From NCBI GenBank assembly GCA_030704615.1, contig CM060731.1, forward strand, positions 31,868,001 through 31,932,000: a stretch of 64,000 nucleotides of DNA, in the 5' to 3' direction. A program made the position numbers and the translations under genes. The first letter of the stretch is position 1; each line of letters begins with the position of its first letter. The DNA is from Takakia lepidozioides (taxonomy: Eukaryota > Plantae > Bryophyta). Of this stretch, positions 22,626-64,000 are shown one piece after another. The notes under the pieces were generated by a model. That model was not told the DNA's origin. It saw nothing but the letters and a program-made list of their open reading frames with translations, and did not search any database.

Positions 22626-23579
22626 CGTCGTCATTGTTGTTTTAAGCTGCCCATATTGCCCAAAGAGAAAACCACAAAAATTAGAAACTTCCTGAACGGG
22701 CGTACCTGCCCTGCCGGCGTGTGTGTTTATGTTGTCGCAGAGTCGACAGCATGATCCGATCAATCCGTAGAGTTTCCAAATCAACCAACATCGTGATTTC
22801 GCGGATGTTCTCAACTCAGTTCTAATTTTCTGCCAGTGATGGAGATGTGTAGCTGAATACTACAGTGCGTGGGAAGCCATTGCAGTGTTCAGACCCATTG
22901 TCAATGGCTGCATCCTCTCACTTCCTCAGTTTCACACCAATTCTTTTCAAATTGTCTTGATGCAGGGGAGGCAATGCAGCATGTGGGATGTGGAGGCTAC
23001 TGGAGTCGTTGTCATCGGCCTTGTGGCTCGCCTATGAATCGGAGCGCTGGCAGCCCCCTGGGTGCCACCCCCAATGCACCGCGCCTCTGTATTAGGGGAG
23101 GGTAGCAGTAAGCGCGTGGTGGAGAAGTTAAATGGCTACTTCAGTCTGGGAAAGAATTGTGCGTGCAGATGAGTGGGGTCTTTCGTCATGCTCTCCTCTA
23201 CAATAAAATTGCAGATCGAATTTTCGCTGAAGGCATTTCCTCGACAGGACATGTGGAATCCAGAAGGTAATTTTCTCTCTCGCTCGTCATTTAGCGGGCA
23301 TAATTGAAGGACAGCGACGTTGTTGGAATGCAGTGGGCATTCTAACTCAATTAACCTAAAACTGAGGAACTTTCTAGGATTGGAAGAGGACCTTACTCTC
23401 CTTATGTTTAAGCTGTAGGGCGCAATCGGGCTCCAACTTTTTGCTATAATAAGGAGCTTTCTGGACGAATCTGGAAAATCTCAATCAAAAGTTGTTCTTC
23501 AAAAGCATAGGCAGCAATTAGCTTGCTTATATCGAAGATTGATTCTGCAACGAATTAAATTCTAGGGTGCATGTTGACA

Positions 23580-39064: not shown

Positions 39065-41463
39065 ATGTCATGGTGTACAATCGAGTCGGATCCCGGTACT
39101 CTCCTCACCATAATTCCTTGCTGCTGCTCTCTATTTGTAAGGGCCTCTGTACTCAAATTAACTATAGAGCCAATTTATGGCGTCTTATGGGGTTTAACTG
39201 AATCCGGATCGTGCCTGGGGCCACACAGTTGCTTTGAAGCTGTTGCAGTTCCATATGTATGGCCATCGTGGAAACAAAGAGAGGGCAGGGTTTGTGGAAG
39301 AAATATGTAATGGACATGTTTCAGATAGAATAAACACTTGTAGACTGCATAGTTTTGGGTTAGGGTTAGCTGTAGAGTGGGGGCAGGAACCAAACCAGTT
39401 TAACCCTCCCAGATTTTGTATGACAATTTCCACTTGATGCATACTGATTTGTAGCAGTTCCAATCGAGATTTGCACCTCTGAAGATTGATTTTCTCCCAG
39501 GTGGGATCTCATTGTCCAGTAACAATTTGTGGGAAACTTAGTCTGATGATGACTACATGTTGGCATCCTTCACAGGGGTGTTCACAGAACTTATCCAGCA
39601 AATGCAAGTCAAAGGAGTTCAGGTATGACTCTTGAGCTGTGTAATGTGGAACAGTCAGCTGTTATATGATAAGTATCTCTAGTTTCTTGAAAGTCTTGAT
39701 TATCTCAATCACACCCTGTACGGTTCAAGTACTTTTTTTGCATGTCATCATCTCTCTCATCTTCTGACCTATCTTCTGGATCAGGGCAACTATAGGCCCT
39801 TCATGGGAGATTGCGTGTTTGGTGCAGGTAGAAGAGCTCTACAGTTTAGACCTTGAATCTCTGGGGTTTCTGAGGTGAGGCCTCTCTCTCTCTCTATCTC
39901 TCTCTCCCTCACATACAGAGAGAGAGAGAGAGAGCAATAATTGACATCTCCTGCTACCTCATCAGAGTTTTATCCAGGAGTGCTCTCTCTCTTTTCAAGT
40001 TCCTTTCCAGCTTGAAAGATTTTTTTCATCTAGGATTGTGGTTGTTAACCCTGTCTGGGATGGGGTGAAGTAGATTACTAGTGCCAGTCACCCCTTTTGT
40101 CTAGTCTGTACTGTGACTGGTGGGTCATCAATGTGAGTACGGAATCTCAATGGGTTCAAGCTGTGTTGCAACCTTCATCAAGTCATCAGGAGGTCAGGAT
40201 CTCTATATGGAGATGCCTCAAATGGACCAAGCTGAAAATAAGTTTTTTCATGTGGAAATTTGCCGGGGTGCTCTTGAGCCTATGGTATTGCCTTGTTGTC
40301 CTCGCAGGCCTGTGTATGGCTTGATATTTCTCTTCAAGTGGTGGCCTGGTGAGAAGGATACACGGCCTGTGTTGAGGGAAGCCAACCCCAATTTGTTTTT
40401 TGCTAGCCAGGTTTGCAACCTCCCCATGAATACTCATATTGGATACATGTCAATCATCTGTCAAACCATTTCAGAAGTACAGCTTTTACCATATCTGTAG
40501 CCTTGCTGGCCATTTACCATCTGTGATAGAAGCTGTGGGTTGATTGGCTTTGTGGTGCTGGAACTGCAATAGCTTTCTCGTAGTCAATGACTTGCCATTT
40601 GGAAGATTGAGAGCTTCATTTCTGAAAATTGATGGTGGTTGTATTGGCAGGTCATCAACAATGCATGTGCCACACAGGCGATTCTCTCCATCCTTATGAA
40701 CCGGCCAGAAATTGAGGTCGGCCCAGAGCTCACAATGCTAAAGGAGTTCAGCAAGGGGTTTCCTCCTGAGCTGAAAGGGCTAGCAATCAACAACAGCGAA
40801 GCAATTCGCACAGCTCATAACAGCTTTGCTAGGCCTGAGCCTTTTGTGGCTGAGGAGCAGAAAGTGGCAGACAAGGACGATGACGTCTACCATTTTATCA
40901 GCTATCTCCCAGTGGATGGAGTACTTTATGAGCTTGATGGGCTCAAGGAAGGACCGATCAGCTTGGGTGAATGTGGGGCTGGTGGGCCTGATTCCATGGA
41001 GTGGCTTCAGCTGGTGCAACCAGTAATCCAAGAGAGAATAGAGAAGTATTCAAAGAGTGAGATCAGGTTCAATCTCATGGCAGTTATTAAGAATAGGAAG
41101 GATATCTACAATGTGGAGATGGCAGAACTGGAGAGCAGAAGGACCCAGATATGGGATCAGTTGGAGGCTGCACAGGCCAAGGGTGAGGATGGCATGGATA
41201 TTGATTCAGCAGGTGGGAAAGAGGAGGGTGAGCCTCCGCCAACGTCCATCCAGACGCTACGAAATAATCTAGCTGATGTGGAGTCAGAGATTGCAAAAGT
41301 GGGTGACAAGATTGCAATGGAGGAGGAGAAGTTCAGGAAGTGGAAAACTGAGAACATCCGACGGAAGCATAACTATATCCCCTTTCTGTTCAATTTTCTG
41401 AAAATCCTTGCTGAGAAGAAACAGCTGAAGCCCCTTATTGAAAAAGCACGTCAGAAGACTTGA
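39065..41463 (+). CDS. UCH2: Ubiquitin C-terminal hydrolase, UCH37/UCHL5 type (plant UCH1/2), 5 exons, ~346 aa
   Basis: Exons 39065-39095, 39576-39622, 39828-39874, 40308-40410 and 40651-41463. Motifs [28 protein letters not shown] (Cys), YHF (His), ELDG (Asp) and a C-terminal [12 protein letters not shown]. Confidence 0.95.
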
Positions 41464-42984: not shown

Positions 42985-44010
42985 AGATAGGCTACTACTA
43001 GTATCTGTGAGGCTAGTAGAACTTGAGGCTACTTGTGAGGCTAAATCTGTGAGGCTACTTGTGAGGCTAGTAGAACTTTCAACCCATGAAAAAATGTCTT
43101 GAAGAATATTAACCCTGAAAGGATGAGGTAAGTTTTAGCACTTTTGGGTCAAAACAGTACGTACCCTGACGTGCCTACCTAGCCTACCTACATCCTCCTA
43201 CCGCCGTCCACCCACATAGATCCACATAGATGAACCATAGAAACTCATCCCTAGTGACGACATGAACCCATGAACCCTCTCACCATTTTAATTGAAATCC
43301 AAGACCAAGTGCAATTTTCCTATGTATCCAAGTGCGTCTCCTATGTTGAGGCCCAAGTGCAATCTCCTATGTATCCAAGAGCTTCTCCCATGTAGAGGTG
43401 CGACCTCCATTGTCATTCTAATATTTTTTTTAATTTAGTTGAATTTTCAGCGACCAAAATTGTTCATATTTCTATAATTCTCGGCCCATAGGTCCAAATT
43501 TTGTGAAACCAAGTCTGTGCACCCCTACTTGTTGAGGGCTTTCCAACGGTACCAAAATCGTGGCCTCTACCTAAGCCCAAGTGCAACCTCCAGTGTCATT
43601 CCAACACTCGATTTTGTAATTTAGTGAATTTCCAACGACAAAACTATTCATAATTCCATAACTCTCGGTCGATAGGTCCAAATTTTATGAAACCAAGTAG
43701 GTGCACCCCTACTCATCGAGGGCTTTCCAACGGTACCAAAATCCTGGCCGCGGTTAGGGAGATCTCGATTAGGCTACAAACAAGATTGTGAACGCCAATA
43801 TTTTTTTTTTAAAACCCAATTTACATTTACGTCCACGTGCACAAATGAAGGGCCAATCGTTGTTCTAGGAAAGCCCACTTTGCTATTTCTCACGAATTTT
43901 CGGTGACCAAAGTACTTGAAATTCCATATCTCCAACACTGTACCCCTCCTCATGAGGGGCTTTCCAATGGTACCAAGCACCAGGGCTGGGCTCACGGTTT
44001 GGGAGATTTT
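42985..44010. repeat. TE-like repeat block: short GTGAGGCTA tandem plus three copies of a unit containing CCCCT..GAGGGCTTTCCAA(C/T)GGTACCAA
   Basis: GAGGCTA repeats about 6 times at 42988-43070. The GAGGGCTTTCCAAYGGTACCAA-like motif recurs at ~43534, ~43718 and ~43955. CCAAGTGC..CTCC also repeats. Ends are not defined. Confidence 0.55.
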
Positions 44011-45330: not shown

Positions 45331-46465
45331 GGTTTGTTGAAAATAATTTGTTCATTATGCTTAGTTTGAACTAGTAGTAATAATTTGCAATAATCAGTTC
45401 ATGTAGGTGAACTGATGAATTTGATAGTAGTTTAGTGGTTTGATGTAATTGCAATAAATTGATTGTTACGCTTAGTTTGAATTCCAAATACATCAGTTCA
45501 TGTCATACTTTACCACAAGTACTACATCACACAGTTAATGAGATCATGTTTAGCTGATAGATCTAGTACCAGAATACATGGGCTTGGCAAATCACCCCAT
45601 TCCATGTAAAAAACCCTTTGCGGTAGTCGAATTCACCATGCTTCCCAAATGGTGTTTTCACATGTTATGCTTGAAACAAAGTTATGGCATGCATATGCTT
45701 CCTTGCGAAATTCAAAGAGCTAGAAGCGATTCAAGGACATTGTGACATGACATGACCCACCCGTGCTGCAAGACTCATTGTTCCAAGGAGCTTCTAGTGA
45801 GTGGATGAGCTGTGGGTGAGTGAGGAGGCCCAAGCAAGTATTGGGACACAACAACGATGGCAGCAAACATAGAACAGTGATGCATTGCAAAAACACTATC
45901 TCAAAATCATGCAAATCTGGTAGCGCCGCGCGAAGACTTGCGTAGACCCGGTACAAGACTTTCAACTTTCAGAGCTGTAGAAGCAACTAAACTATAGAAA
46001 GAAACTGCAGAAGTTCATGGGCAAATTATGAAGGTACACAGTACAACACTTTCAACTTTAGTGCTGTAGAGGTCAAGCAATTAAATTATAGAAATTGCAG
46101 AAGTTCATGGGCAAAGTCTAAAATAGCAATATTTCAGCAAATGTGATTGCCAGCCAGTAGTGTGCCCCGAACTTTCCCCAGTAAACTGCCTATGAAACGA
46201 AACGCAAATGCGATAACATTTCACCATTTGGTAATAGGATACCTCAAGAAAGCCATGCTAGATAAAGCCCTAGAGGCACAAGTTGGTGAAGATGTAAATG
46301 CTTCGAGCTCACCACCGTGTCTCCAGATGCATTCACGGGAGAAACATTTCGAACAACAGTTTGTGGACAACAAGCGCTTGAGGGGAGCAAACGAACGTTG
46401 GGAATTGAAAACACAGACATGCATCCATATTTGTCGAAGTTTCTCCCAAACGGACCTCAAATCGT

Positions 46466-47971
46466 TGTTAACCCCCGTTTTGGGCTATCGCCTCCGGTTA
46501 AGCTTGTCGAACAGGCCCCGACAGGGTCCCTACTCTGTCGTAACCACTCGGCTATGTGTGGCCCCAATTAAGCGAAATCTGGCGGTTCGTAGACCAATTT
46601 TGCTCCTTAACCCCCCAGATGAGGCCTAGCCCTTAGTCTATTGGGAACTGCCAGAAGAAAAACGAACAGAGGTTTGGGTATTATAGACCCTCAGTCGTAA
46701 ATCGTCGCCTTACTGGCTAAGTGGATCCCAAGGGTCTTTACTCATCTCTTAGTACCCTGGAGTCTGCAGGTTAGACACAATCTTACCTATGTTACCCCGC
46801 ACTCAAGCCAGCTCTGGTCTGCCTCGCTTCGCTGGATCATTCAAGGAGGAAAATCCTAAGGTAGGCTCGAAGGCCTGGGAGACCATCTGGCATGCATGGT
46901 GTAAAGTCCACCCATATCTCTCGCAAATCCAATCCTTCCTCTTTTGAAGAGGTCATCCGTCAGCCCCTTTTTGGGAACTACAACCCTGCCGACGAGGTGT
47001 TGGTGCGATGTTCGGAATGTTGGGCCTTTTGGGAAGCAGTAGGTATCGACTCTAACCAATGTCACCGGGTGGTTGGTCAACACATCTTGGGACCAAATCT
47101 GGCGGCTGACTTGCTGAGGCTGCTGATCAACTCTTCTCCTTCACCGTGCTCTCCATCCTTGCTCCCGTTCCTACTCTCCCCTGATCTCCTCTCGTGAATG
47201 ACCAAGCAGTGCTCTCCGTGAAGTGTGCTCCATGTCGCTGCTCTGTTTAATTTATCTGCAAGTTGTTCTAACCGCCTAACTAACTAACTGTCACCCAAGA
47301 AGTAAGCACGTTCCATCTGCAGATGTTGTTCCCACATAGTCGTTCCCTGCCAATGATAACCGTTCCCTATGTACGCTATGACGGGTTGTGCCAAACTATG
47401 TCGGGCTATGACTGTGCCGAGCTGTGGCTGGCTGTGTCGGACTGTGTCGGACTGTGACTGGCTGTGCGAAGCTGTGTCGAGTTGTGTCGTGTTGTGTCGG
47501 GCTGTGACTGGCTGTGCGAAGCTGTGTCGAGCTGTGATAGACTGTGACTAACTGTGACAGACTGTGTCGGGCTGTGTAAGACTGTGTATGGTTGTGACTG
47601 ACTGTGCAACCTTGTGTACCACTCCCTAAGCCTGTGTTGGTCTAAGTCTACCATCGTAAGTCTGCGCAAAAATTAAGGGTACCCCACAGAACCCGTAAAA
47701 CTGTCTAAGTCCCAGATAGCCCTCTAACATTACCCCTCCCCCTCTCAAAAAGCCGTGTCCTCACGGTTTACTGTTTAGGATCAGCAAACCTTTGTGAGCG
47801 AGCACCCTTCTGTCAGTGAGAGTCCTTTGGAGGGCTCTGTGTGCGAGCCCGAGCCCTGTCACTGGCTGATGGAGATAAATGGCGACTAGCTGGAACTGCC
47901 AACCCTGCGTTAGTTTGAGAAAGAGGTAAATGTTGTGGTATAGGAGATCCCCGTCGTCTTTTGTCTGCCAT
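46466..47971 (-). mobile_element. Ty3/gypsy-like retrotransposon 3' end: LTR (46466-47729), PPT and a short internal stretch, interrupted by CACTA
   Basis: LTR bounded by TGTTA (46466) and TAACA (47729). Just inside it the minus strand reads CGTGAGGACACGGCTTTTTGAGAGGGGGAGGGGTA, a gypsy-type PPT context. The internal sequence is cut at the CACTA TIR at 47972. Confidence 0.7.
47381..47620. repeat. 10-bp-period minisatellite (NCTGTGNNNN)n inside the LTR
   Basis: About 24 units such as GCTGTGTCGG, ACTGTGACTG and GCTGTGCGAA. Confidence 0.9.
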
Positions 47972-50900
47972 CACTACTAGAGAAACCGGTTTTTCCAACA
48001 CCACCCATAGTTCATACCTGGCACTTTGAACGGCTCCTCTTACACCCATGTGAGAGGAGGCAAGGTGTGATCTGGACCATTGTAGGAAAAGCCACATGGT
48101 GTTACAAATTTCACACTCAAATGACACCCATATGGTCAACGGATGTTGACCAAGAAAATTCATATGGGGCATTTGACATGAGTGTGAAATGAGTCATGGA
48201 GTGTGAGATGTCCTACAGGAATTTGGGGCAACTATATGGCGTGGCACATTGACCATCCAGGAGGAAGATGGATGGATGAAATGACTTCCACCTCTATTCA
48301 ACATGCCTTGGACGACATAACACATAGACTTTTGTTTAGAGAATTAAAAAGTTCAAAAATGTTATTAGGGTTATGGGGTATGCATGTAGAGGGTTGTGGG
48401 ACTTGTAGTTTTTCTTTGCCAGCTCGTTTAGAATCTGAATGCCCACCAGTGCAGGCCATCCCTTTAAGTTGATGCCAAAATGCATTTTCATCCAAACATC
48501 AAAGCTCTCAAAATAGACAACCTCAAGTAAAATGGGAAGGAGATCAGCAGAACCGAAAGGGCATAGAATTCTCTTCAATATTGAACACTGCCTACAACTA
48601 TTGGCTATAACTTGCCCTCTGTCCTGTCACATATAATTCCTCCGGGAACCAGCAATCCAAAAAGATGCACTGCTCATGCAGTTGACGACAATATCGTTAT
48701 GAGAATGTCACACTATAATCAACAATATACAACAATTGCTTTGAGAAGCTATAGATAAAACTACCACATGTCGCCTCAGAGATTTGTGAGCCCGGCAATG
48801 TCAATCCAATTTCTGTCTAGTCAACCATGACCCCTCACAATGAGACAGTCTAAAGTTGAGCTGAGCACGGATTTCAATCTCTACTAGTCCAACCGTACTA
48901 GAGAAATATCCAGTGATCCTCAGACAAGGTTTTCTTCGCCACCTTACAAAAATTGTTCCCAATGACTCCCTCCATGTCCACATTGTTGCTAGATGTCGAG
49001 AAGCTTGGACAAAGTGCCTTGCTCTTTGTGACTAGCTCCCTTTTTGAGACAGCAGGGTTTTTTTTTTTACGGATGTACTTCACTCACAACCGTCTTTTTT
49101 ACACTGCGTCCGGGATATCAATGATCACCCCAGCCTGAATTTTTCCCCACCCTATCGCTTGCCAGTGTTTTTTAACTAGTGCTTTTCAACTCGTCTGCTG
49201 AGGGCCTCACTTTCTCCCCTTCGCTGGTACATGTCAAAATCACTCCAAGAGCCATAGTGTTGGAAAACTGCCTTCGCATCCTTGATGCTCCCACATTTGG
49301 CATACATGTCCACGAGGGCATTGTTCAGAATCACATCAAGTACAATTTCAGCTTTGACAATGAAGCCATGGACCTCTTCCCATTTTCCAGAACTGCCAGG
49401 CTTGCCCTTGATGCTCCCACATTTGGCATACATGTCCACGAGGGCATTGTACAATTCCAGCTTTGACAATGAAACCATGGCCCTCTTCCCATTTTCCAGA
49501 GCTGCCAGGCTTGCCCTTCATGCTCCCACATTTGGCATACATGTCCATGAGGGCATTGTTCAGAATCACATCAGGTACAATTCCAGCTTTGACAATGAAG
49601 CCATGGCCCTCTTCCCATTTTCCAGAGCTGCTAGGCTTGCCCTTCATGCTCCCACATTTGGCATACATGTCCACGAGGGCATTGTTCAAAATCACATCAG
49701 GTACAATTCCAGCTTTGACAATGAAACCATGGACCTCTTCCCTTTTTCCAGAGGTGCCAGGCTTGCCCTTGATGCTCCCACATTTGGCATACATGTCCAC
49801 GAGGGCATTGTTCAGAATCACATCAGGTACAATTCCAGCTTTGACAATGAAGCCATGGCCCTCTTCCCATTTTCCAGAGCTGCCAGGCTTGCCCTTGATG
49901 CTCCCACATTTGGCATACATGTCCACGAGGGCATTGTTCAGAATCACATCAGGTACAATTCCAGCTTTGACAATGAAACCATGGACCTCTTCCCATTTTC
50001 CAGAGCTGCCAGGCTTGCCCTTGATGCTCCCACATTTGGCATACATGTCCACGAGGGCATTGTTCAAAATCACATCAGGTACAATTCCAGCTTTGACAAT
50101 GAAACCATGGACCTGATCTTCCATTTTCACAGGCAATGTTGTGCTTGAAATGTGGCCGTCTTGGATGAATCTGGACCCACACTCTATCCCTGCTCCTTCA
50201 GCTATCCATGCCTCTGCACAAATCATGCATACATCCTTGCCTTGCTGGTAGCAGCTGACAATAACAGCCTACATTTGTTCTTGGAAACACCCAACTCAAC
50301 TTCTCACACTAGTTCCTATGCTCAATTGCATCCGCTACTCTCTGTAATCCAACAGGCATTCATCTTTTTGCCACAATTGGGCCACCATTGACTAGGGTCA
50401 GAAAAGTATTCATGCCACAGCTTCATGACTGTTTAGGGTTCACTGTCACAAATGAAAGTGTGTTTGTCAGAATTCTGCCCACCCCAACAGCTCAGTCACT
50501 CCCACCCATGCAAGGTACCATGCTGTATCAAGTCTAAACCCTGGAAAAATACATGCAATAGCAGAAACCAACTCTAGACCATAGCACAACTGGCCTAGTA
50601 CCTCCCATGTGGAGCTTGCCTCCGCCTTCTACCATTTCCCCTTTGCCTTGTAGGTGCATTCAAGTTGGCAATGCCCAATTCATCTGCCTCACTCAAAAGA
50701 ACACAAACAGCAGGCTCAGTCATGATGTTATGAGGAATTTCAGGAGGCACCATGCCTACATAAGTGTCTCCCTCACCCAGTGCCACTTTTGTAATATCGT
50801 GAACCACTCGTCGGGATCGAGGGTCCTTGTGAAGGACCACCTTCCAGTTCCCTCGTGAACTTTTTTCATCCGAGAAAAAAACTTGCTCCACCTGACTAGG

Positions 50901-52905
50901 GAATGTCCAGGGCTGCTCCATCCGAGGTAACATGCGACTGAAGTCAACCAAGAGAAAGCCATAATCATCTCGTTTCATGGTGGCATTCCGGCCCACCATG
51001 TGTGACCTCACCCATCTACACAAGAACAGAATTGGGCGAAGAATTCCGTAATCCAGTTGAATTGTTTCTCTTACAACACCCACATATTCCAATTGGGATA
51101 ACACTCGTCTGGACATACCTCCACTGTTTTCGCTTTCCTGATGGAATACTTGAGCAACTCCAGAATCAAATGTCACCGTGTCTGTGGCGCCAGTCCCATC
51201 ACGTATTGCTCGAAAGTGATTGCCGTAAGCATACGTGGACTTGAGGCCCAAGGACTGTACTGCTGGTGGTATACATAAATGGCATATGTCCAAATCATAG
51301 GACTCGCCTGAACTCACCTTGCGTTGGACAACACCTTCAATCCATTCATGGAATGGAGCCAGTAAGCGCATATCTGTTGGGTATGGAATTTCTCCATTGT
51401 GGTGGTCCTGGTCTTGTCCACAAAGGAATGTTGTTCTGAACTCAGTGCGGGATGCTTCTATGAGTGCCATCTCCTCTTCATAGGCCCTGTCCAAATGAGA
51501 ATTGCAAATTAGGATTACAGCTTATACCATTGGCAGAAATGAAACACACAGGATATGATAAGCAACATACTCAAGGAATGGTTTCATGCAATCTGTGTTG
51601 TGCAAAATATAATCGTGTGCACTGTCTCATTCTTGAATGGTGAGGACTCGTACACTTCCCAATCCTTGAACCACCTCCCCACTAACTGAGTCTTCTTCAT
51701 TGGAGTCCCACACCCTTCGGCTTGTAGCATGAAATTCAGCCATATACTCAGTTAGAAACCCTAGGGCCTCATCCAAAGCATACCCTTCCGCCATGCTCCC
51801 TTCAGGTCGGCTCATATTCCTTACATAGCCTTTTAATGTCTTCATATACCGTTCCATAGGATACATCCAACGGCTAGACACAGGACCACACACCTCCAAT
51901 TCGTCCACAAGGTGTACAAGCAAGTGAGTCATGACATCAAAAAATGACGGAGGGAATTCTTTCTCCAGCAGACACATAGTGATTGTAACATCTTCTTTTA
52001 AGGCCGGTAGCTCAGCTTGATTAATGGTCTTCGCACACATTTTTCGGAAGACTCGAGAAATCCTCATAATTGCCATCGGTGGACCCTTTCCCAATACCCC
52101 TCGAATGCAAAGAGGTAAAATCTGCTGCATCATTACATGATAGTCATGGGTTTTCATCATAGACAGTTTATTGTCAGCCACATGTTTCTGGAATGTGGCA
52201 GCATAACCTGTGGGGGCCTTTACTGCAGCCAACGTTTCCAAAAACAGCACCTTCTCATCTTCAGTAAGAACATATGGGGCCAAAGGCTTCACCAACTTGT
52301 TCGGTTGAGAGGGATGGGGTCTCAACCACAAGTGTTCACGAATGACAATTAGTTTCATATCCTTCCTAGATGTGGCTGTGTCCTTCTCCCCAAGAATGGT
52401 TCTCAGCACATTCTCACACAAAAAAAAATCACAATGCATTACATCCAGTGTGTATCGGATGAGTACGTCTTTCCAGTATGGCAATTGGTTCAAAACAGTG
52501 ACCCGTTTCATGCCATGTTCCTTTGAAGGGTCCTCTTCTCCCCCCTCAGCCCCTCCCATTGCGAGATACAACTCTCTGGTTGTAGCCCGGTCAAATTGCT
52601 CACTTGCAGTGACCACCATAGGAGCTTCTCTATGTTCCACATGTCCATTAAAGTGGGATGAGTTATTCCTGTAGGGATGAACAGCAGGCAAGTATCTCCT
52701 ATGACCAAGATACAAAACCTTTTTGCATGCCTTGGAGTACCTGGAATCAACATTAGGGCCGCAAGCTGGGCAGGCCTTGTATCCCCCGTGTGCGCATCCT
52801 GCTAGCAACCCATAAGCTGGAAAGTCGTGGATTGACCACATCAAGATGGCCCTCATGCGAAATGACTGCTGCCCCACTGGTATGCTTCCATCCAATGCCT
52901 CCACA
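47972..52905 (-). mobile_element. CACTA (En/Spm) transposon copy 1, interrupted within its transposase
   Basis: TIR CACTACTAGAGAAACCGG at 47972. Transposase 3' half lies at 52904-50595 (Tnp2/Transposase_21 C-terminus with DUF4218- and DUF4216-like parts; LDVMHC, RWMYPMERYMKTLK), with a premature stop at 51627. Carries a PPR-derived array. Confidence 0.9.
49281..50128 (-). repeat. PPR-derived tandem array 1: seven 126-bp units (one of 109 bp, last partial)
   Basis: The ATGCTCCCACATTTGG anchor occurs at 49285, 49411, 49520, 49646, 49772, 49898 and 50024. The unit translates VHGFIVKAGIVPDVILNNALVDMYAKCGSIKGKPGSSGKWEE. Confidence 0.95.
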
Positions 52906-54284
52906 CACTACTACAGAAACCGGTTTTTCCAACTCCACCCATAGTTCACACCTGGCACTTTGAACAGCTCCTCTTACACCCATTTGAGAGGAGGCAAGGT
53001 GTGATCTGGACCATTGTAGGAAAAGCCACATGGTGTTACAAATTTCACACTCGAATGACACCCATACGGTCAATGGGTGTTGACCAAGATAATGCATATG
53101 GGGCATTTGACATGAGTGTGAAATGAGTCATGGAGTGTGAGGTTAGTGTGAGATGTCCTATAGGAATTTGGGGCAACTATATGGCATGGCACATTGACCA
53201 TCCAGGTGGAAGATAGATGGATGAAATGACTTCCACCTCTATTCAACATGCCTTGGACGACATAACACATAGACTTTTGTTTAGAGAATTAAAAAGTTCA
53301 AAAAGGTTATTAGGGTTATGGGGTCTGCATGTAGAGGGCTGTGGAACTTGTAGTTTTTCTTTGCCAGCTCATTTAGAATGTGAATGCCCACCAGTGCAGG
53401 CCATCCATTTAAGTTGATGCCAAAATGCATTTTCATCCAAACATCAAAGCTCTCAAAATAGACAACCTCAAGTAAAATGAGAAGGAGATCGGCAGAACCG
53501 AAAGGGCATAGAATTCTCTTCAATATTGAACACTGCCTGCAACTATTGGCTATAACTTGCCCTCTGTCCTGTCACATATAATTCCTTCGGGAACCAGCAA
53601 TCCAAAAAGATGCACTGCTCATGCAGTTGACGACAATATCGTTATGAGAATGTCACACTATAATCAACAATGTACAACAATTGCTTTGAGAAGCTATAGA
53701 TAAAACTACCACATGTCGTCTCAAAGATTTGTGAGCGCCAAAAATGTCAATCCCATTTCTGTCCAGTCAACCTTGACACGCAATTCAGGACACGCAGCGG
53801 AGAGGGCGTAGGCGCATGTGCACATCAACCCTAGGCCCCTCACAATGAGACAGTCTAAAGCTGAGCTGAGCACGAATTTCAATCTCTACTAGTCCAACCG
53901 TACTAGAGAAATATCCAGTGATCCTTAGACAAGGCTTTCTTCGCCACCTTACAAAAATTGTTCCCAATGACTCCCTCCCTGTCCACATTGTTGCTTGATG
54001 TCGAGAAGCTTGGACAAAGTGCCTTGCTCTTTGTGACTGGCTCCCTTTTTGAGACAGCAGGGTTTTTTTTTTACGGGTGTACTTCACTCACAACCGTCTT
54101 TTTTACACTGCGTCCGGGATATCAATGATCGCCCCAGCCTGAATTTTGCCCCACCCTATCGCTTGCCAGTGTTTTTTAACTAGTGCTTTTCAACTCGTCT
54201 GCTGAGGGCCCCACTTTCTCCCCTCTACTGGTACATGTCAAAATCACTCCAAGAGCCATAGTGTTGGAAAACTGCCTTCGCATC

Positions 54285-56775
54285 CTTGATGCTCCCACAT
54301 TTGGCATACATGTCCACGAGGGCATTGTTCAGAATCACAATCAGGTACAATTCCAGCTTTGACAATGAAACCATGGACCTGATCTTCCCTTTTCCAGAGC
54401 TGGCAAGCTTGCCCTTGATGCTCCCATATTTGGCATACATGTCCACGAGGGCATTGTTCAGAATCACCTCAGGTACAATTCCAGCTTTGACAATGAAACC
54501 ATGGACCCCTTCCCTTTTCCAGAGCTGCCAGGCTTGCCCTTCATGCTGACACATTTGGCATACATGTCCACGAGGGCATTGTCCATAATCACATCAGGTA
54601 TAAATCCAGCTTTGACAATGAAACCATGGACCTCTTCCCTTTTCCAGAGCTACCAGGCTTGCCCTTGATGCTCCCACATTTGGCATACATGTCCACGAGG
54701 GCATTGTCCAGAATCACAATCAGGTACAATTCCAGCTTTGACAATGAAACCATGGACCTGATCTTCCCTTTTCCAGAGCTGGTAGGCTTGCCATTGATGC
54801 TCCCACGTTTGGCATACATGTCCACGAGGGCATTGTCCAGAATCACAATCAGGTACAATGCAAGCTTTGACAATGAAACCATAGACCTGATCTTCCATTT
54901 TCCAGAGCTGGCAGGCTTGCCCTTGATGCTCCCACATTTGGCGTACATGTCCACGAGGGCATTGTTCAGAATCACATCAGGTACAATTCCAGCTTTGACA
55001 ATGAAACCATGGACCTCTTCCCTTTTCCAGAGCTGCCAGGCTTGCCCTTCATGTTGACACATTTGGCATACATGTCCACGAGGGCATTGTCCAGAATCAC
55101 ATCAGGTATAATTCCAGCTTTGACAATGAAACCATGGACCTCTTCCCTTTTCCAGAGCTACCAGGCTTGCCCTTGATGCTCCCACAATTGGCATACGTGT
55201 CCACGAGGGCATTGTCCATAATCACAATCAGGCACAACTCCAGCTTTGACAATGAAACCATGGACCTGATCGGAACCTTTTCCAGAGCTGGCAGGCTTGC
55301 CATGGATGCTCCCACGTTTGGCATACATGTCCACGAGGGCATTGTCCAGAATCACAATCAGGTACAATTCCAGCTTTGACAATGAAACCATAGAGCTGAT
55401 CTTCCCTTTTCCAGAGCTGCCAGGCTTGCCCTTGATGCTCCCACATTTGGCGTACATGTCCACGAGGGCTTTGTTTAGAATCACATCAAGTACAATTCCA
55501 GCTTTGACAATGAAACCATGGACCCCTTCCCTTTTCCAGAGCTGCCAGGCTTGCCCTTCATGTTGACACATTTGGCATACATGTCCACGAGGGCATTGTC
55601 CAGAATCACATCAGGTATAATTCCAGCTTTGACAATGAAACCATGGACCTCTTCCTTTTTCCAGAGCTGGCAAGCTTGCCCTTGATGCTCCCACATTTGG
55701 CATACATGTCCACGAGGGCATTGTCCAGAATCACAATCAGGTACAATTCCAGCTTTGACAATGAAACCATGGACCTGATCGGAATCTTTTCCAGAGCTGG
55801 CAGGCTTGCCATTGATGCTCCCACGTTTGGCATACATGTCCACAAGGGCATTGTCCAGAATCACAATCATGTACAATGTAAGCTTTGACAATGAAACCAT
55901 AGAGCTGATCTTCCCTTTTCCAGAGCTGGCAGGCTTGCCCTTCATGCTCCCACATTTGGCATACATGTCCACGAGGGCATTGTCCAGAATCACAATCAGG
56001 TACAATTCCAGCTTAGACAATGAAACCACGGACCTGATCTTCCCTTTTCCAGAGCTGGCAGGCTTGCCCTTGATGCTCCCACATTTGGTATCCCTAAAGC
56101 ATGGACCTAATCTTCCCTTTTCCAGAGCTGCCAGGCTTGCCCTTCATGCTAACACATTTGTCATACATGTCCACGAGGGCATTGTCCAGAATCACATCAG
56201 GTACAATTCCAGCTTTGACAATGAAACCATGGACCCGATCTTCCCTTTTCCAAAGCTGCCAGGCTTGCCCTTCATGCTGAAACATTTGGCATAAATGTCC
56301 ACGAGGGCATTGTCTCGAATCACATCAGGTATAATTCTAGCTTTGACAATGAAACCATGGACCTCTTCCCTTTTCCAAAGCTGCCAGGCTTGCCCTTGAT
56401 GCTCCCACATTTGGCATACTTGACCATGAGGGCATTGTCCACAATCACAATCAGGTACAATTCCAGCTTTGACAATGAAACCATGGACCTGATCTTCCCT
56501 TTTCCAGAGTTGGCAGGCTTGCCCTTGATGCTCCCACATTTGGCATACATATCCACAAGGGCATTGTTCAGAATCACATCAGGTACAATTTCAGCTTAGA
56601 CAATGAAACCATGGACCTGATCTTCCCTTTTCCAGAGCTGCCAGGCTTGCCCTTGATGCTCCCACGTTTGGCATACATGTCCACGAGGGCATTGTTCAGA
56701 ATCACGTCAAATACAATTCCAGCTTTGACAATGAAACCATGGACCTCTTCCCTTTTCCAGAGCTGCCAGGCTTGC
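54285..56775 (-). repeat. PPR-derived tandem array 2: ~20 units of 125-130 bp with higher-order structure
   Basis: Anchors at 54289, 54418, 54543, 54668, 54797, 54926, 55051, 55176, 55306, 55435, 55560, 55685, 55815, 55944, 56073, 56146, 56274, 56399, 56528 and 56656. Confidence 0.95.
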
Positions 56776-57490
56776 ACACGCGCTGCAAACGCACACAAAT
56801 GTGTTGTGGTCGGGCTTCATCCCTTCCCCCATCATTTGGTCATGATAGGTCTCCAAAGGCTCCATCCCACTTCACTGCTGTGCACATCCTGCAAGCATCG
56901 CGCTCCACGACACCACATCTTGTTCAGCCATAGTGTTGAACACTCCCTCCGCATCCTCAATGCTCTCACATATATTTGGCATACATGTCCACGAGGGCAT
57001 TGTTCAGAATCGCATCTGTTACAATTCCAGCTTTGGTGATGCAACCATGCACCACTTTGCCCTTTTGCAGGGCTGCCAGACTTGCACGCGCACTACAAAC
57101 GCACAATCTTGTTCAGCCATAGTGTTGAACACTCCTTTCGCATCCTCAATGCTCCCACATTTGGCATACATGTGTCCACCAGAGCAGTCATGTTCAGGAT
57201 GACATCTGGTACAATTGCAAATTGCCACGATGGATCTCTTTGCCCTTTTCCAGGGCTGCCAGGCTCCCACACTCACTGCCAACACACACAAATGTTATGT
57301 GGTCGGGCTTCACCCTTCCCCCATCATTTGCTCATAGGTCTCCAAAGCCTCCATCCCATGCCCCTCCAAGCATCGCACTCCACGACACCACATCTCGTTT
57401 AGCCATAGTGTTGAACACTCCCTTGGCATCCTCGATGCACCCACATTTGGCATATATTACCACCAGGGCAGTGTTCAAAATGACATCTGA
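56776..57490 (-). pseudogene. Unamplified captured PLS-PPR gene fragment inside CACTA copy 2
   Basis: Reverse strand reads DVILNTALVVIYAKCG.IEDAKGVFNTMAKRDVVSWSAM, EGVKPDHITFVCV..SLAALEKGKEIH and EGMKPDHNTFVCVCSACASLAALEKG, running directly into array 2. Frameshifted. Confidence 0.9.
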
Positions 57491-58292
57491 TAATCTGCCA
57501 GGCATTCACCTTTTTGCCTCGGTTGTCCCACCATTGACTGGATCAGAAAAGTATTCATTCCACACCTTCTCCTCATCTCTTGTACCTGTTTTTGGATACT
57601 TTCCTGTTGTCACATTGGCAGTATCATGTCAAAGTCACTCCAATCTATCAAAGATTCACTCAACCAGCTACCTTGCAATTCAACATGGAAATTTAGGGCT
57701 GATTCTGATAAGGGGAAAAACAGGCTGAAATGTGTTGAAGAAGGTGCCATCATCGCCTGATTTTACCAATTGTGCCGCTGCTGCTGCGGCTTCAAGTTGA
57801 CCATCTACCCATGCAGGTTTCTTGTAGCTATCCTTCCACAAGGAATCATACGCAATGTTGTGCTTGAAATGTGGCCCTCTTGGATGAATCTGGACCCACT
57901 CTCTATCCCTGCTCCTTCAACTATCCATGCCTCTGCACAAATCATGCATACATCTTTGCCTTGCTGGTAGCAACTGACAATAACAGCCTACATTTGTTCT
58001 AGGAAACACCCAACTCAACTTCTCACACTAGTTCCTATGCTCAATTGCATTTGCTACTCTCTATAATCCAACATGCATTCACCTTTTTGCCACAATTGGG
58101 CCACCATTGACTAGGGTCAGAAAAGTATGCAGGCCACAACTCCATGACTATTTAGGGTTCACTGTCACAAATGAAAGTGTGTTTGTCAGAATTCTGCCCA
58201 CCCCAACAGCTCAGTCACTCCCACCCATGCAAGGTACCATGCTGTATCAAGTCTAAACCCTGGAAAAATACATGCAATAGCAAAAACCAACT

Positions 58293-61200
58293 CTAGACCA
58301 TAGCACAACTGGCCTGGTACCTCCCATGTGGAGCTTGCCTCCGCCTTCTACCATTTCGCCTCCGCCTTGCAAGTGCATTCAAGTTGGCAATGGCCAATTC
58401 ATCTGCCTCACTCAAAAGAACACAAACAGCAAGCTCAGTCATGATGTTATGAGGAATTTCAGGAGGCACCATGCCTACATAAGTGTCTCCCTCACCCAGT
58501 GCCACTTCTGTAATATCGTGAACCACTCGTCGGGATCGAGGGTCCTTGTGAAGGACCACCTTCCAGTTCCCTCGTGAACTTTTTTCATCCGAGAAAAAAA
58601 CTTGCTCCACCTGACTAGGGAATGTCCAGGGCTGCTCCATCCGAGGTAACATGCGACTGAAGTCAACCAAGAGAAAGCCATAATCATCTCGTTTCATGGT
58701 GGCATTCCGGCCCACCATGTGTGACCTCACCCATCTACACAAGAACAGAATTGGGCGAAGAATTCCATAATCCAGTTGAATTATTTCTCTTACAACACCC
58801 ACATATTCCAATTGGGATAACACTCGTTTGGACATACCTGCTCTATTTTTGCTTTCCTGATAGAATACTTGAGCAACTCCAGAATCAAATGTCACCGTGT
58901 CGATGGCACCAGTCCCATCACGTATTGCTCGAAAGTGATTGCCGTAAGCATACATGGACTTGAAGCCCAAGGACTGTACTGTTGGTGGTATACATAAATG
59001 GCATATGTCCAAATCATAGGACTCACCTGAACTCACCTTGCGTTGGACAGCACCTTCAATCCATTCATGGAATGGAGCCAGTAAGCGCATATCTGTTGGG
59101 TATGGAATTTCTCCATTGTGGTGGTCTTGGTCTTGTCCACAAAGGAATGTTGTTCTGAACTCAGTGCGGGATGCTTCTATGAGTGCCATCTCCTCTTCAT
59201 AGGCCCTGTCCAAATGAGAATTGCAAATTAGGATTACAGCTTATACCATTGGCAGAAATGAAACACACAGGATATGATAAGCAACATACTCAAGGAATGG
59301 TTTCATGCGATTTGTGTTGTGCAAAATATACTCGTGTGCACTGTCTCGTTCTTGAATGGTGAGGACTCGTACACTTCCCAATCCTTGAACCACCTCCCCA
59401 CTAACTGAGTCTTCTTCATTGGAGTCCCACACCCTTCGGCTTGTAGCATGAAATTCAGCCATATACTCAGTTAGAAACCCTAGGGCCTCATCCAAAGCAT
59501 ACCCTTCCGCCATGCTCCCTTCCTTACATAGCCTTTTAATGTCTTCATATACCGTTCCATAGGATACATCCAACGGCTAGACACGGGACCACACACCTCC
59601 AATTCGTCCACAAGGTGTACAAGCAAGTGAGTCATGATATCAAAAAATGACGGAGGGAATTCTTTCTCCACCAGACACATAGTGATTGTAACATCTTCTT
59701 TTAAGGCCGGTAGCTCAGCTGGATTAATGATCTTTGCATACACTTTTCGGAAGACTCGAGAAAGCCTCATAATTGCCATCGGTGGACCCTTTCCCAATAC
59801 CCCTCGAATGCAAAGAGGTAAAATCTGCTGCATCATTACATGGTAGTCATGGGTTTTCATTGTAGACAGTTTATTGTCAGCCACATGTTTCTGGAATGTG
59901 GCAGCATAACCTGTGGGGGCCTTTACTGCAGCCAACGTTTCCAAAAACAGCACCTTCTCATCTTTAGTAAGAACATATGGGGCCAAAGGCTTCACCAAAT
60001 TGTTCGGGTGAGAGGGATGGGGTCTCAACCACAAGTGTTCACGAATGACATTTAGTTCCATATCCTTCCTAGATGTGGCTGTGTCCTTCTCCCCAAGAAT
60101 GGTTCTCAGCACATTCTTACACAAATGTTTTTCACAATGCATCACATCCAGTGTGTATCGGATGAGTACGTCTTTCCAGTATGGCAATTGGTTCAAAACA
60201 GTGACCCGTTTCATGCCATGTTCCTTTGAAGGGTCATGTTTTCCCCCCTCAGCCCCTCCCATTGCGAGATACAACTCTCTGGTTGTAGCCCGGTCAAATT
60301 GCTCACTTGCAGTGACCACCATAGGAGCTGCTCTATGTTCCACATGTCCATTAAAGTGGGACGAGTTATTCCTATAGGGATGAACAGCAGGCAAGTATCT
60401 CCTATGACCAAGATACAAAACCTTTTTGCATGCCTTGGAGTACCTGGAATCAACATTAGGGCCGCAAGCTGGGCAGGCCTTGTATCCCCGTGTGCGCATC
60501 CTGCTAGCAACCCATAAGCTGGAAAGTCGTGGATTGACCACATCAAGATGGCCCTCATGCGAAATGCATGTTGCCCCACTAGGCTACTTCCATCCAATGC
60601 CTCCACACCAATTTCCCACAACAATTTCAGCTCATCCACAAGGGGCTGCAGATAAACATCTGCATTGTCATTTCCCACAGATTGTGGTCCAGGAATCAAT
60701 AAAGCCAACATCGTGAAAAATGGCTTAGTACACAGCCGATTATAGTTTACCAACATGACAGGCCAAGTTGACCATTTGTTTGATTTATCACTGTGAGGAT
60801 TGACACCATCCCATGCGAGACCCAATCGCAGATTTCTGGGGTCCGCTGCAAACTCAGGCCATTTTTGGTCAATGTGGGCCCAAGCCTTGTTGTCTGCTGG
60901 GTGCCTAACCAAGCCATCCTGACTTCGATTCTTAAAGTGCCATGACATTAACTCTGAGATGGATTTGGCTTTATACATTCGAAGCAGCCTTGGAATGATA
61001 GGGAAATGTCGAAGGACCTTACGAGGTACTGGTGTCTTCGTACCCACCACATAACGACGTGCCTGACATTTTGGACAAACCTCCAAATTCTGAAGCTCCC
61101 TTTTGAACAACACACAACCTTTCGGACATGCATGTATACTCTCGTAATGAAGCCCGAGTTCCATTATGAGTTGTTTTGCCTCATAGTGGGACTTTGGCAG

Positions 61201-62072
61201 GCAATTGTCTGCTGGCAACAGTTGTCTTCCTAACAATGTAAGGAGTTCATCGACAAAGGTGTTTGACACACCATGGGTTTGACAAGCATTTAACAGCAGT
61301 AAGGTAGCAGACAATCGAGAGGAAGAACTCCCTACATATAAAGCCCTGGATGCCTTGTGCTCAAAATGTAAGGCACTCGCTGCACCACGATCACCATCGC
61401 TCTTCAGTCCACCATCAGTTTGCTCTGGCACTCCATCTATGTCCCATTGGCCCTGTGTTCCATCTCCCGGTTCCTCATGTGCATCACCAGTTTGCACCCC
61501 ATTATCTATAGTTGCGAATGTCTCCCAGAGCATTCTAAGCATGTCAAGATTACGATCCAAGGTATCAGAACCACCTGCAGGGCTGGTTTCCGTTCTAAAC
61601 CCCTCATGTTCGTCTCCAGAGTTTTCCTGCTTAGTACATATCAGACGCCACGTGTCAATCCACTATAAGATGGGGAGTTTTTTCATTTGCAATAGTGGCT
61701 GTGGAACGTGCCATTATACAGCCACGTGGCAATAGGAAAACGGGCATGTACAATATTCTACACCTTACAACAATACCACTACAGGAATTTGAACTGTTTC
61801 TTATAATTTCAAAGTATGCATGTGCAAAGGGAAGAGAATCCAGAGATATGCACCGGGAGTTCTTGTAAGTTAGGATCTCGCAAGTTCAAAAGCACATGAC
61901 GCTTAGCCCGGCCAATGGTTTGCCAGTTCCCACCATGACAGGCATTGCATGGACATAGAATTTTCCGAAGACCCAGTCTTCTTGCTCGCGCTTCCTCTAG
62001 TTTCCACAGTCTGTCATCGTCATGTTCTGCTTGTGTCCGCCATTGCAATCGACAGGCAGTAGGAGGGATCAT
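58293..62072 (-). pseudogene. CACTA TnpD-like transposase of copy 2 (full-length, spliced, disrupted)
   Basis: Exon 62072-~61855 carries a transposase-associated CPCxxC..H domain. The large exon has IHACPKGC, LRHFPIIPRL, DPRNLRLGLAWDGVNP, DFPAYG and LDVMHCEK. A 1-nt deletion at ~60487 and a 16-nt deletion at ~59520 relative to copy 1 shift the frame. Last exon ~59205-58293. Confidence 0.92.
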
Positions 62073-62101
62073 CTTGGCGAGTGAGCGAGACTTGTCAGAA
62101 A

Positions 62102-62694
62102 ATGGAGACCCAAATAGAGTGTCCAGAAGTTACACCAGGGCGCAAGCCTACAGCGAGGGAGGTAGAACGAGCAAAGCGTCAAGCGGAGAACAAGACATTC
62201 TTTGCATGGCTCAAGATCTACGACATTGCAAAGAGGTCCGAACTTCCGTTTTTTTCATATCCCCTACCTAGCCCTAGCCATGAAACGGCATTAAAAGCTC
62301 CAAACCTGCAGAGAGGATATGATAGGGTTTTGCAGCTGTTGACTTTGTCTTTCTTCTTCTTTGCAGCGTCGAAGAGAGCTTGAGTCGCCCTAAGCCCCTC
62401 GTTGAGGAAATCCTCAAACACACAGGTCCTCCTCACCGAAGTCACAGAGTTCAACTCCTGCACTCTGAAATGTCACAACGGGAGAAAGAGGTAGAGCAAG
62501 AGGAGGAAGCGCAGGTTCAAGCGGAGTCAGACACAGAGGAGGCACGAGAGCAAGAATTGCAGCGAGACCAAGATTATGCCGCACATGAAGACTTGAATGA
62601 GACCAGCTCGGAGTCAGAGATGGAAACGATGAAAGAAGCCCCAACAAAGACAAAGCGCGCAAAGCACCCTGCAAACTCCCCAACCCATCAGCAG
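62102..62694 (+). CDS. Divergent spliced second ORF of the CACTA element (acidic/coiled-coil, function unknown; partial)
   Basis: Exon 62102-62235 (METQIECPEV..FFAWLKIYDIAK), a GT..TTTGCAG intron, then exon 62367-62694 in frame (SVEESLSRPKPLVEEILK..EQEEEAQ..). Downstream exons are unclear. Confidence 0.5.
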
Positions 62695-64000
62695 GTTTGC
62701 GATCTGCACCAAAGTTCTGTCTCCATGTGCATATGAAAAGGCAGTGAGGGTAAGAAACAATTACAACAAGGTTGTTGGGCATGAGTCTTGTATATGAATT
62801 TGGGTGGGAAAAGGCTCACTGGAATGTCAACTCTAGTTGCCTGCTTTCTGGCTTGGTCTGGATTGTAATGAGGCCAACAGTTGTGGGGGTCATACTTCTT
62901 CTTCAATAAAGCCAAATAGACAGTGCAGCACTAGAGGCACTTGAAGTCCTTACCCCTAAACCCTCCAACATCTCTTTGCCAATTCAACTTGTGGACCATG
63001 TGCCTTTGTTTTCAGCAATGTGAGTGTTGGTACTCTTATGGTATGCTTGACTCTCCTTCATGATGGTATATAAATGTTGCCTCTTTTTCCTTTTTCATCT
63101 TGAACCCATAAACTGAGAATAGTGGTTTTGACTTGGTGATTGTCTCTCACCAATCCATGGACCAAGAAGAAGAACAACATGAACGGTAGTGACAAGCCAC
63201 TTTGTCAGCTCCCAAAAGTACGGGACATCTGTCACGTTGTTGGCTATCGCTTAAACAAAGAGAGGGGATAAGAATGAAGAAGAAAAAGAAGAGACAAGAC
63301 AGAGAAGAGAAGGAGGAAGAGATAAAGGGGTAAGTGAAGTCCCTGGGCTTGCACAAGCTCCCCACTTGATCTCACGTATATAAGAGTCAATGTATAGTTA
63401 TATGTACTCTTACTCTTTATCTTCTTTTCTGTCCCCTCTTTTTTGCATTCTCTCTTCCTTCACTATCACAGACACTTGCTCTGGGAAAATGGTAAACCTT
63501 CCGCAGCAATACAGTCATAGTGTGGAGGAGGGGCTTGCCAATGTCCATTTGTTCCCTTCATGTGTCTCCGATCTTGAGGCAAAGAAACCCAGATACATAG
63601 GCGCAGGCACCACTCTATACAGTCTGCATAATGAGTAGCCAGTCAGTGGTTTCTAAAAACAGACACATATACTCAGTGACCGTTCCCTCTGTGAACAATG
63701 GGTGGAATTCAGTCAATACTGGTTACCAGAATCTATAATAGCAGAGGAGGGTGAAGAATACAAAAAAGAATAATTATGTCAACAGGACTGAAGACAGGAA
63801 GATAGACAGAAAGGAAGAAACTTAAAAACATCCACAGGGGCCCAGAGGGCGCATGTAGAAAAGAGAACAACAAGAAACCTTGGAGAGAGAGATTATACTC
63901 ATAAGACATTGTTTGCCATAGCCTTGTGGCCATTGACCCCGCGCCCAATTTGAGTGGGAACAAAAGGGACAGAACCTACCTCTGTCAGGGGCTGACGTTG

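Follow-up and report, generated by a model that had tools for sequence, protein, structure and literature searches.

How does part of a host gene become a tandem repeat inside a DNA transposon? PLS-class PPR proteins are the specificity factors for RNA editing in organelles, and hornworts, Takakia, and lycophytes have thousands of PLS-PPR genes. For a locus in Takakia lepidozioides, the original prediction was that a family of CACTA transposons had captured a fragment of a PPR editing factor and had amplified one segment of it into tandem arrays. We analyzed the window, which is the entire stretch of 64,000 nucleotides of contig CM060731.1 that includes this locus. For the MATE gene, the best named matches over the full length came from mosses (56-57%) and from Diphasiastrum (60%), as for a land plant with no close relative in the database. 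The window contains two adjacent disabled CACTA copies, each with a decayed piece of a PPR gene that has been amplified into a tandem array (Table 1).

Table 1. Features of the two CACTA copies (positions within the window)
Feature	Position	Strand	Remarks
CACTA copy 1, partial	47972..52905	-	3' terminus to mid-transposase, cut off there by copy 2
Terminal inverted-repeat sequence, copy 1: CACTACTAGAGAAACCGG	47972..47989	+	From terminus pattern search
Array 1	49263..50132	-	7 PPR-derived units: mostly 126 bp, one of 109 bp, deletion-junction unit of 131 bp
Transposase remnant, copy 1	50595..52905	-	DUF4218, DUF4216, part of Transposase_21
Terminal inverted-repeat sequence, copy 2: CACTACTACAGAAACCGG	52906..52923	+	Directly adjoins copy 1 transposase
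Terminus-proximal non-coding region, copy 2	52924..54266	-	No Pfam domain, no subterminal repeats
19-bp direct repeat TTGGAGTGAYTTTGACATG, downstream copy	54234..54252	-	Orthologous site in copy 1 is 49230-49248
Array 2	54267..56775	-	19 units of 125-130 bp and one 73-bp partial unit
Higher-order repeat in array 2	54396..55921	-	Three copies of a 4-unit block of ~509 bp, units B2-B13
Unamplified parent fragment	56776..57499	-	~2.5 decayed PLS-PPR triplets; stops, frameshifts, one internal deletion
19-bp direct repeat TTGGAGTGAYTTTGACATG, upstream copy	57625..57643	-	Brackets PPR insert of copy 2
Transposase gene, copy 2	58293..62072	-	Transpos_assoc, Transposase_21, DUF4218, DUF4216
Region upstream of copy 2 transposase gene	62073..64000	-	No second terminus

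Two disabled CACTA copies

When we compared the window to itself, the two copies appeared as two pairs of homology blocks (47972-49280 with 52906-54284, and 50127-52906 with 57846-60608). Both copies start with the terminus CACTACTA(G/C)AGAAACCGG, at 47972 and 52906, and each terminus is the exact start of a homology block. These are CACTA(C/G)-type ends, one in each copy (CACTACTAGAGAAACCGG in copy 1). They were the only matches in the window with up to 3 mismatches, and just 0.01 matches would be expected by chance.

The minus-strand open reading frames include the Pfam domains of the tnp2-type transposases of the CACTA / En-Spm superfamily. For example, Transposase_21 scored 170.6 bits (the cutoff is 28.6) and DUF4218 scored 126.6 bits (the cutoff is 27). 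A CACTA-type protein from Riccia aligned to the transposase at 42% identity. Both transposase genes are broken: the gene in copy 2 has frameshifts near 60487 and near 59550, and the remnant in copy 1 has a premature stop at 51627-51629.

We did not find a second (partner) terminus within the window, even in a search that went down to 12-mers with 2 mismatches, so the other end of the copy 2 element is beyond the window. (We rejected a lone CACTAC near 63191 as the second terminus: a 6-mer like this is expected by chance, and copy 1 does not resume in its flank.) For a 3-bp target-site duplication, the candidate triplets are CAT (copy 1) and ACA or CAC (copy 2), with the right ends beyond the window. 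The terminus-proximal region of copy 2 is 96.2% identical to 47972-49262. The subterminal repeats that help to define CACTA elements are missing, as there was no repeated motif in the 1.3 kb beside the terminus. (A 10-bp repeat block is present at 47409-47606, outside the element.) Open reading frames near the terminus, like those upstream of the transposase, had no match in Pfam, and we found no further cargo there.

The prediction referred to a family of elements, but we see only these two adjacent copies in the window, and searches of public data found no others. Protein searches with open reading frames from the arrays found ordinary PPR proteins only, with at most 30% identity in one search and at most 53% identity, over short stretches, in the other. 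The closest relative of the transposase's C-terminus in a protein search was 51% identical. Exact-pattern scans of metagenomes gave 0 matches for the array junction or for the terminus.

PPR-derived arrays and their parent fragment

In both copies, the tandem array was said to lie just downstream of the transposase's stop, in the orientation of the transposase, and this is what we found: the array is between the CACTA terminus and the 3' end of the transposase, and the transposase gene and the PPR sequence are on the same (minus) strand in each copy. A Pack-CACTA has a fragment of a host gene between its termini; here, the PPR fragment and its arrays occupy the stretch from the terminus to the transposase. 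The 19-bp direct repeat that brackets the PPR insert of copy 2 has 3 matches in the window, while 0 of 100 shuffles gave 3.

Copy 2 was also said to keep the unamplified parent of the array, and it does. In tblastn searches, PLS-PPR proteins from Sphagnum and Diphasiastrum covered 57499-56746 in three frames, with E values down to 1e-42, so the parent fragment is real and frameshifted. (It reaches slightly past 57490, the limit given originally.) The S-motif anchors within the fragment are 308, 185, and 286 bp apart. Spacings of 286-308 bp, together with the alignment to PLS-PPR proteins, match P-L-S triplets of about 101 amino acids. Pfam matches on short pieces of the fragment were below the cutoff. 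With an open reading frame from an array as the query, phmmer matched only PLS-PPR proteins (E values of 1e-30 to 1e-54). The PLS-PPR part of the predicted capture therefore stands, but an E or DYW part is absent from the fragment (no match in 49000-57900), so it can be called an editing factor only by its class. Nor is it an intact gene, as it has stops and is spread across three frames. Another PPR sequence in the window, a PPR-DYW pseudogene at 23560-25163, is 75.8% identical to the parent fragment at the DNA level, which is in keeping with a PPR origin but too low for a donor, and we rejected it as such.

On the minus strand, the repeat unit reads ...ASLAALEKG / EVHGFIVKAGIVPDVILNNALVDMYAKCGSIK, which is the end of an L motif and the start of an S motif. 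This content was described correctly, but the L part and the S part are in different reading frames. The native continuation SIKDAKAVF closes both arrays, as had been noticed (unit A1 at 49263 and unit B1 at 54267). We counted units from in-register anchors. Array 1 has 7 S-motif units by this count, while array 2 has 19 plus a partial unit, in agreement with the reported 7 and ~20. Tandem Repeats Finder reported 49449-50114 in array 1 (period 126, 5.3 copies, 96% matches, and a score of 1241) and both 54284-56088 and 56096-56775 in array 2 (periods 125/128, with scores of 2892 and 1025).

Because the unit's L and S parts do not share a frame, the arrays do not encode any PPR protein. Also, the unit lengths of 125-130 bp disrupt every reading frame in array 2. 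Array 1 is open in all frames, but only because it repeats a stop-free 126-bp unit, and we rejected the idea of a coding array.

Relation of the two copies

The two copies are not independent loci. The terminus of copy 2 exactly adjoins the truncated transposase of copy 1 (the junction is 52905/52906), and copy 2 looks, most simply, to be nested in copy 1, which in turn is a deletion derivative and has lost the parent fragment. The copies have diverged by about 3-4% (K2P of 0.032-0.039), plus several indels.

Units A1 and B1, at the ends of the arrays, are orthologous: each is the other's best match (93%), so the array is older than the split of the copies. Similarly, A7, a unit of the 129 type, most resembles B4, which implies that both types of units are older than the split. 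The array was predicted to be dynamic, and judging from the units themselves, the two arrays changed independently after the split: array 1 has its own variant of the unit and array 2 has a higher-order repeat. Specifically, units A3-A6 are 95-98% alike, and their common variant is found only in array 1. In array 2, units fall into four higher-order classes (B2/6/10, B3/7/11, B4/8/12, and B5/9/13), and Tandem Repeats Finder reported higher-order periods of 379 and 455. Copies of the higher-order block differ by ~5.5%, which is more than the difference between the two element copies, so the order of events is not secure.

Might the second copy have arisen by a local event, without insertion? 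There could have been a tandem duplication, either mediated by the transposon's end or recombinational (for instance, aberrant or sister-chromatid transposition). If so, the array-bearing element never moved to another site, and there is no mobile family with PPR cargo. The copies lie side by side and share one orientation, neither the second terminus nor a target-site duplication is within the window, and public protein and metagenome data gave no further copy, all of which is consistent with a local event. On the other hand, the junction coincides with the CACTA terminus's first base, as insertion predicts. We consider a local event to be unlikely.

Overall, it seems likely that a CACTA acquired a PLS-PPR fragment, that a unit within it was amplified, that a second copy of the element arose, and that the arrays then changed separately. 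A CACTA (En/Spm-type) element would have acquired a fragment of a PLS-class PPR gene with at least about 2.5 P-L-S triplets (the boundaries are putative). The fragment would have been placed in the non-coding region that separates the transposase's stop from the 3' terminus, with the orientation of the transposase. Within the fragment, a segment of ~126 bp, which spans the end of an L motif and the beginning of the S motif that follows, would have multiplied head-to-tail, perhaps by replication slippage or unequal exchange. The founding unit probably had the frameshift already, in which case the array would have lacked PPR coding from the outset. The array-bearing element would then have given rise to a second copy, with its terminus inside the transposase gene of copy 1; nested insertion would be the simplest route. 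After that, the array in copy 2 may have acquired the three copies of its 4-unit block, while copy 1 may have lost the parent fragment and part of its array by deletion, and its remaining units may have been homogenized to the 126-bp variant. The arrays themselves are most likely neutral cargo of the transposon.

Alternatively, the arrays might be functional: read-through transcripts could yield putative small RNAs with matches in trans to PLS-PPR genes, or PPR modules could be shuffled into genes. Stretches of up to 35 nt are identical between the array and the S motif of the unrelated PPR-DYW pseudogene 25 kb away, so sequence matching by 21-24-nt RNAs would be possible. However, the arrays are direct repeats only, with no inverted arrangement for double-stranded RNA; the unit has a frameshift, and with lengths of 125-130 bp no frame stays open through array 2; and both transposase genes are dead. 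We find a functional role highly improbable. It also seems improbable that CACTAs in this PPR-rich non-seed plant repeatedly pick up PLS-PPR sequence, with arrays that act in trans as a putative source of small RNAs (via the conserved S motif) or as vehicles for PPR modules. Finally, it is hardly credible that the arrays or the junction between the copies are mis-assembled repeats, as the units differ by 2-20% and are in an ordered higher-order pattern, the copies differ by 3-4% and by several indels, and the junction is exactly at a transposon terminus.

Comparison with known systems

The locus combines two known habits of transposons, gene-fragment capture and 3' satellite arrays in CACTAs, and both have been published. 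Specifically, there are CACTAs that carry captured gene fragments as well as satDNA arrays in their 3' region (PMC8978399), and Pack-CACTAs capture host sequence (PMC6379663). The spread of PLS-PPR genes is currently ascribed to dispersed duplication and retroposition (PMC13386178). A PPR-carrying family of CACTAs would imply that, in such a genome, PPR-derived DNA is moved by DNA transposons as well. If arrays did act in trans or move modules, this would add a DNA-transposon route to an expansion of the PPR family that has been ascribed to retroposition (PMC13386178). The locus we describe is decayed and non-coding, and it documents a mechanism for the birth of repeats, not a new function.

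Like PLS-class PPR genes, the parent fragment has the motif order S-P-L, a period of ~300 bp, and alignment to PLS-PPR proteins. Unlike them, it lacks an open reading frame and any E or DYW part, and the parts of the unit do not share a frame, which makes it a gene fragment, not a gene. Pack-CACTA and other Pack-TYPE elements (PMC6379663, PMC8903248) resemble this locus in that CACTA termini surround captured host coding DNA and in that direct copies are closely spaced. But Pack elements are non-autonomous, with no transposase gene of their own, while here there is a full but broken transposase gene, and the cargo is a non-coding amplified fragment.

The CACTA-like Jozin of Chenopodium (PMC8978399, PMC7320549) is also a tnp2-type CACTA with captured fragments of host genes and with satDNA arrays in the 3' region. 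In Jozin, the gene fragments are in the element's 5' region, unlike here, and the host here is a non-seed land plant. Also, the source of the satellite monomers of Jozin was either a fragment of tnp2 or an unrelated satellite, while the monomer here is a piece of a captured host PPR gene. The Takakia locus is a clean example of a captured coding fragment that gave rise to a tandem array and of a parent that is still next to it.

Arrays, their unit and their setting

Across the whole window, Tandem Repeats Finder identified two arrays that are built from one common unit. We delimited their full extents by anchoring on the conserved S-motif stretch (see the table), and the unit counts agree well with the 7 and about 20 of the original prediction. 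The sense strand of the PPR sequence is the minus strand. When translated on that strand, the unit reads ...ASLAALEKG / EVHGFIVKAGIVPDVILNNALVDMYAKCGSIK, which joins the last part of an L motif to the start of an S motif, and the native continuation SIKDAKAVF closes both arrays. Both the content of the unit and this shared ending had been predicted from the sequence, and the translation and the S-motif anchors confirm them. Within the unit, the loss of about two bases in the GKEVH region puts the L and S parts out of frame with each other. The long ORFs that span array 1 in several frames are no more than a product of repeating a 126-bp unit that lacks stops. Both arrays are direct repeats without an inverted partner.

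Features of the window
Feature	Position	Strand	Details
Inverted repeat	2292-2684 / 3688-4081		arms ~393 bp, 89% identity, ~1 kb apart
PPR-DYW pseudogene	23560-25163	+	5'-truncated; ~3 PLS triplets plus E and DYW domains
MATE (DETOXIFICATION) gene	35585-37225	+	host gene; intronless 546-aa ORF
UCH-type ubiquitin hydrolase exon	40639-41463	+	host gene
Short tandem duplications	43305-43749 and 45951-46115		periods 47, 184 and 90 bp; ~2 copies each
10-bp repeat block	47409-47606		~20 tandem copies
Copy 1, partial CACTA	47972-52905	-	
Copy 2, CACTA	52906 to past window end		
Homology block one	47972-49280 = 52906-54284		96.2% identity, K2P 0.039
Homology block two	50127-52906 = 57846-60608		96.9% identity, K2P 0.032
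Array 1, Tandem Repeats Finder call	49449-50114		period 126, 96% matches
Array 1, full extent	49263-50132	-	7 units (A1-A7)
Array 2, Tandem Repeats Finder call	54284-56775		periods 125/128; higher-order periods 379 and 455
Array 2, full extent	54267-56775	-	19 units (B1 onwards) plus one 73-bp partial unit
Unamplified PPR parent	56776-57499	-	adjoins array 2
19-mer, copy 2	54234-54252 and 57625-57643		
19-mer, copy 1 orthologous site	49230-49248		

The exact first bases of both copies are CACTACTA(G/C)AGAAACCGG, and even with 3 mismatches allowed, the window contains no further match to this terminal 18-mer (0.01 expected by chance). Across each array from the terminus, on the PPR-sense strand, are ORFs with Transpos_assoc, Transposase_21, DUF4218 and DUF4216 domains. 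(These ORFs align at 42% identity with a Riccia protein that has DUF4218 and DUF4216 domains.) Self-comparison of the window gave two homology blocks between the copies. With termini on one side and a same-strand transposase on the other, both arrays are internal to CACTA elements, in the interval that separates the transposase stop from the 3' terminus; the terminus, the domains and the homology blocks all uphold this part of the original prediction. In the window, we did not find a second CACTA terminus, or subterminal repeats beside the known one. The 10-bp repeat block (unit CTGTGTCGRG / CTGTGACTGG) lies 370-560 bp outside the terminus of copy 1; copy 1 may have inserted here into another transposon's subterminal region.

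As predicted, copy 2 also holds an unamplified parent fragment. In tblastn, it aligns in three frames with PLS-PPR proteins of Sphagnum and Diphasiastrum, with E-values down to 1e-42. Its S-motif anchors are spaced by 308, 185 and 286 bp. It contains about 2.5 P-L-S triplets, one of them internally deleted, and has stops and frameshifts. The PPR fragment and its array are bracketed by a 19-mer (TTGGAGTGAYTTTGACATG) that occurs nowhere else in the window except at the orthologous site in copy 1; none of 100 shuffles had three matches, and the likeness around the sites is confined to the 19 bases. This repeat is likely a trace of the PPR fragment's entry.

History of the copies and their arrays

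The transposase of copy 1 runs straight into the terminus of copy 2. In copy 2, the equivalent of this break is position 60608, across which its own sequence continues undisturbed. Most simply, copy 2 would be nested in copy 1, because an insertion would place the break exactly at the start of a terminus. Alternatively, a local duplication mediated by the transposon end may have produced the two copies. Copy 1 has no counterpart of the stretch from 57845 down into the array. Minus-strand homology ends at ...caacattgc in both copies and copy 1 resumes in the middle of a unit, which argues that copy 1 is a deletion derivative and that the older structure is the one preserved in copy 2. Neither copy has an intact transposase gene. 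Besides being severed by copy 2, the gene of copy 1 contains a stop at 51627-51629, a point at which the frame of copy 2 stays open. Compared with copy 1, the frame of copy 2 is shifted near 60487 and again near 59550.

At the array ends, units A1 and B1 match each other best in both directions (93%), and A7, a 129-type unit, is nearest to B4. These matches indicate that the array already had several units, of both types, before the copies separated. In array 2, B2-B13 are three copies of a 4-unit block (about 509 bp each). In array 1, A3-A6 are 95-98% alike and have an extra base (GGAAAATGGG) that is absent from every 125-type unit of array 2; among array 2 units, only B5, which is a 129-type unit, reads GGAAAATGG. 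The blocks and the unit variant show that the two arrays have changed independently. Any ordering of these events is tentative, since the copies of the higher-order block differ by about 5.5%, which exceeds the divergence between the two elements.

Potential function and neighboring features

The array sequence codes for no PPR protein, and the elements that carry it are dead. The PPR arrays are most likely neutral, and we consider it very improbable that they have a function. Exact matches of up to 35 nt connect the array to the S motif of an unrelated PPR-DYW pseudogene (the 35-nt identity is at 24169-24203). This identity suggests nucleotide-level conservation of the S motif throughout the PPR family of this genome. 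Since such stretches are shared, small RNAs from the array, if they are made, could match PPR genes.

The PPR motifs of this pseudogene are spread across three frames, its terminal ...CSC*EYW tail contains a stop, and Pfam clearly recognizes its E motif and DYW deaminase domains. Just upstream (~21170), we noticed by eye an RT-like motif, GTRQGDPLG, which Pfam did not confirm. Elsewhere in the window, the inverted repeat could be a foldback element or transposon ends, and the best full-length named matches of the MATE ORF are from mosses (56-57%) and Diphasiastrum (60%).

Comparison with known elements

In public data, protein searches with the array ORF matched only ordinary PPR proteins and no other copy, and no protein exceeded 51% identity to the CACTA transposase. 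Metagenome contigs contained no exact match to the array junction or to the terminus. In the open-access literature, we found no description of CACTAs that had captured PPR sequence. The host of these arrays is a non-seed land plant rich in PPR genes; for plants of this kind, growth of the PPR family was ascribed to retroposition, in a study that does not mention CACTA (PMC13386178). Capture of genic DNA is known from Pack-CACTAs, which insert as direct copies at close spacing (PMC6379663). CACTAs of Chenopodium combine captured gene fragments with satellite arrays in their 3' region (PMC8978399). In Chenopodium, a tnp2 fragment of the CACTA-like element Jozin seeded a major satellite (PMC7320549), whereas here, the monomer is a piece of a captured host gene, a PLS-PPR. 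This origin of the monomer, with the parent preserved alongside, is what is new.
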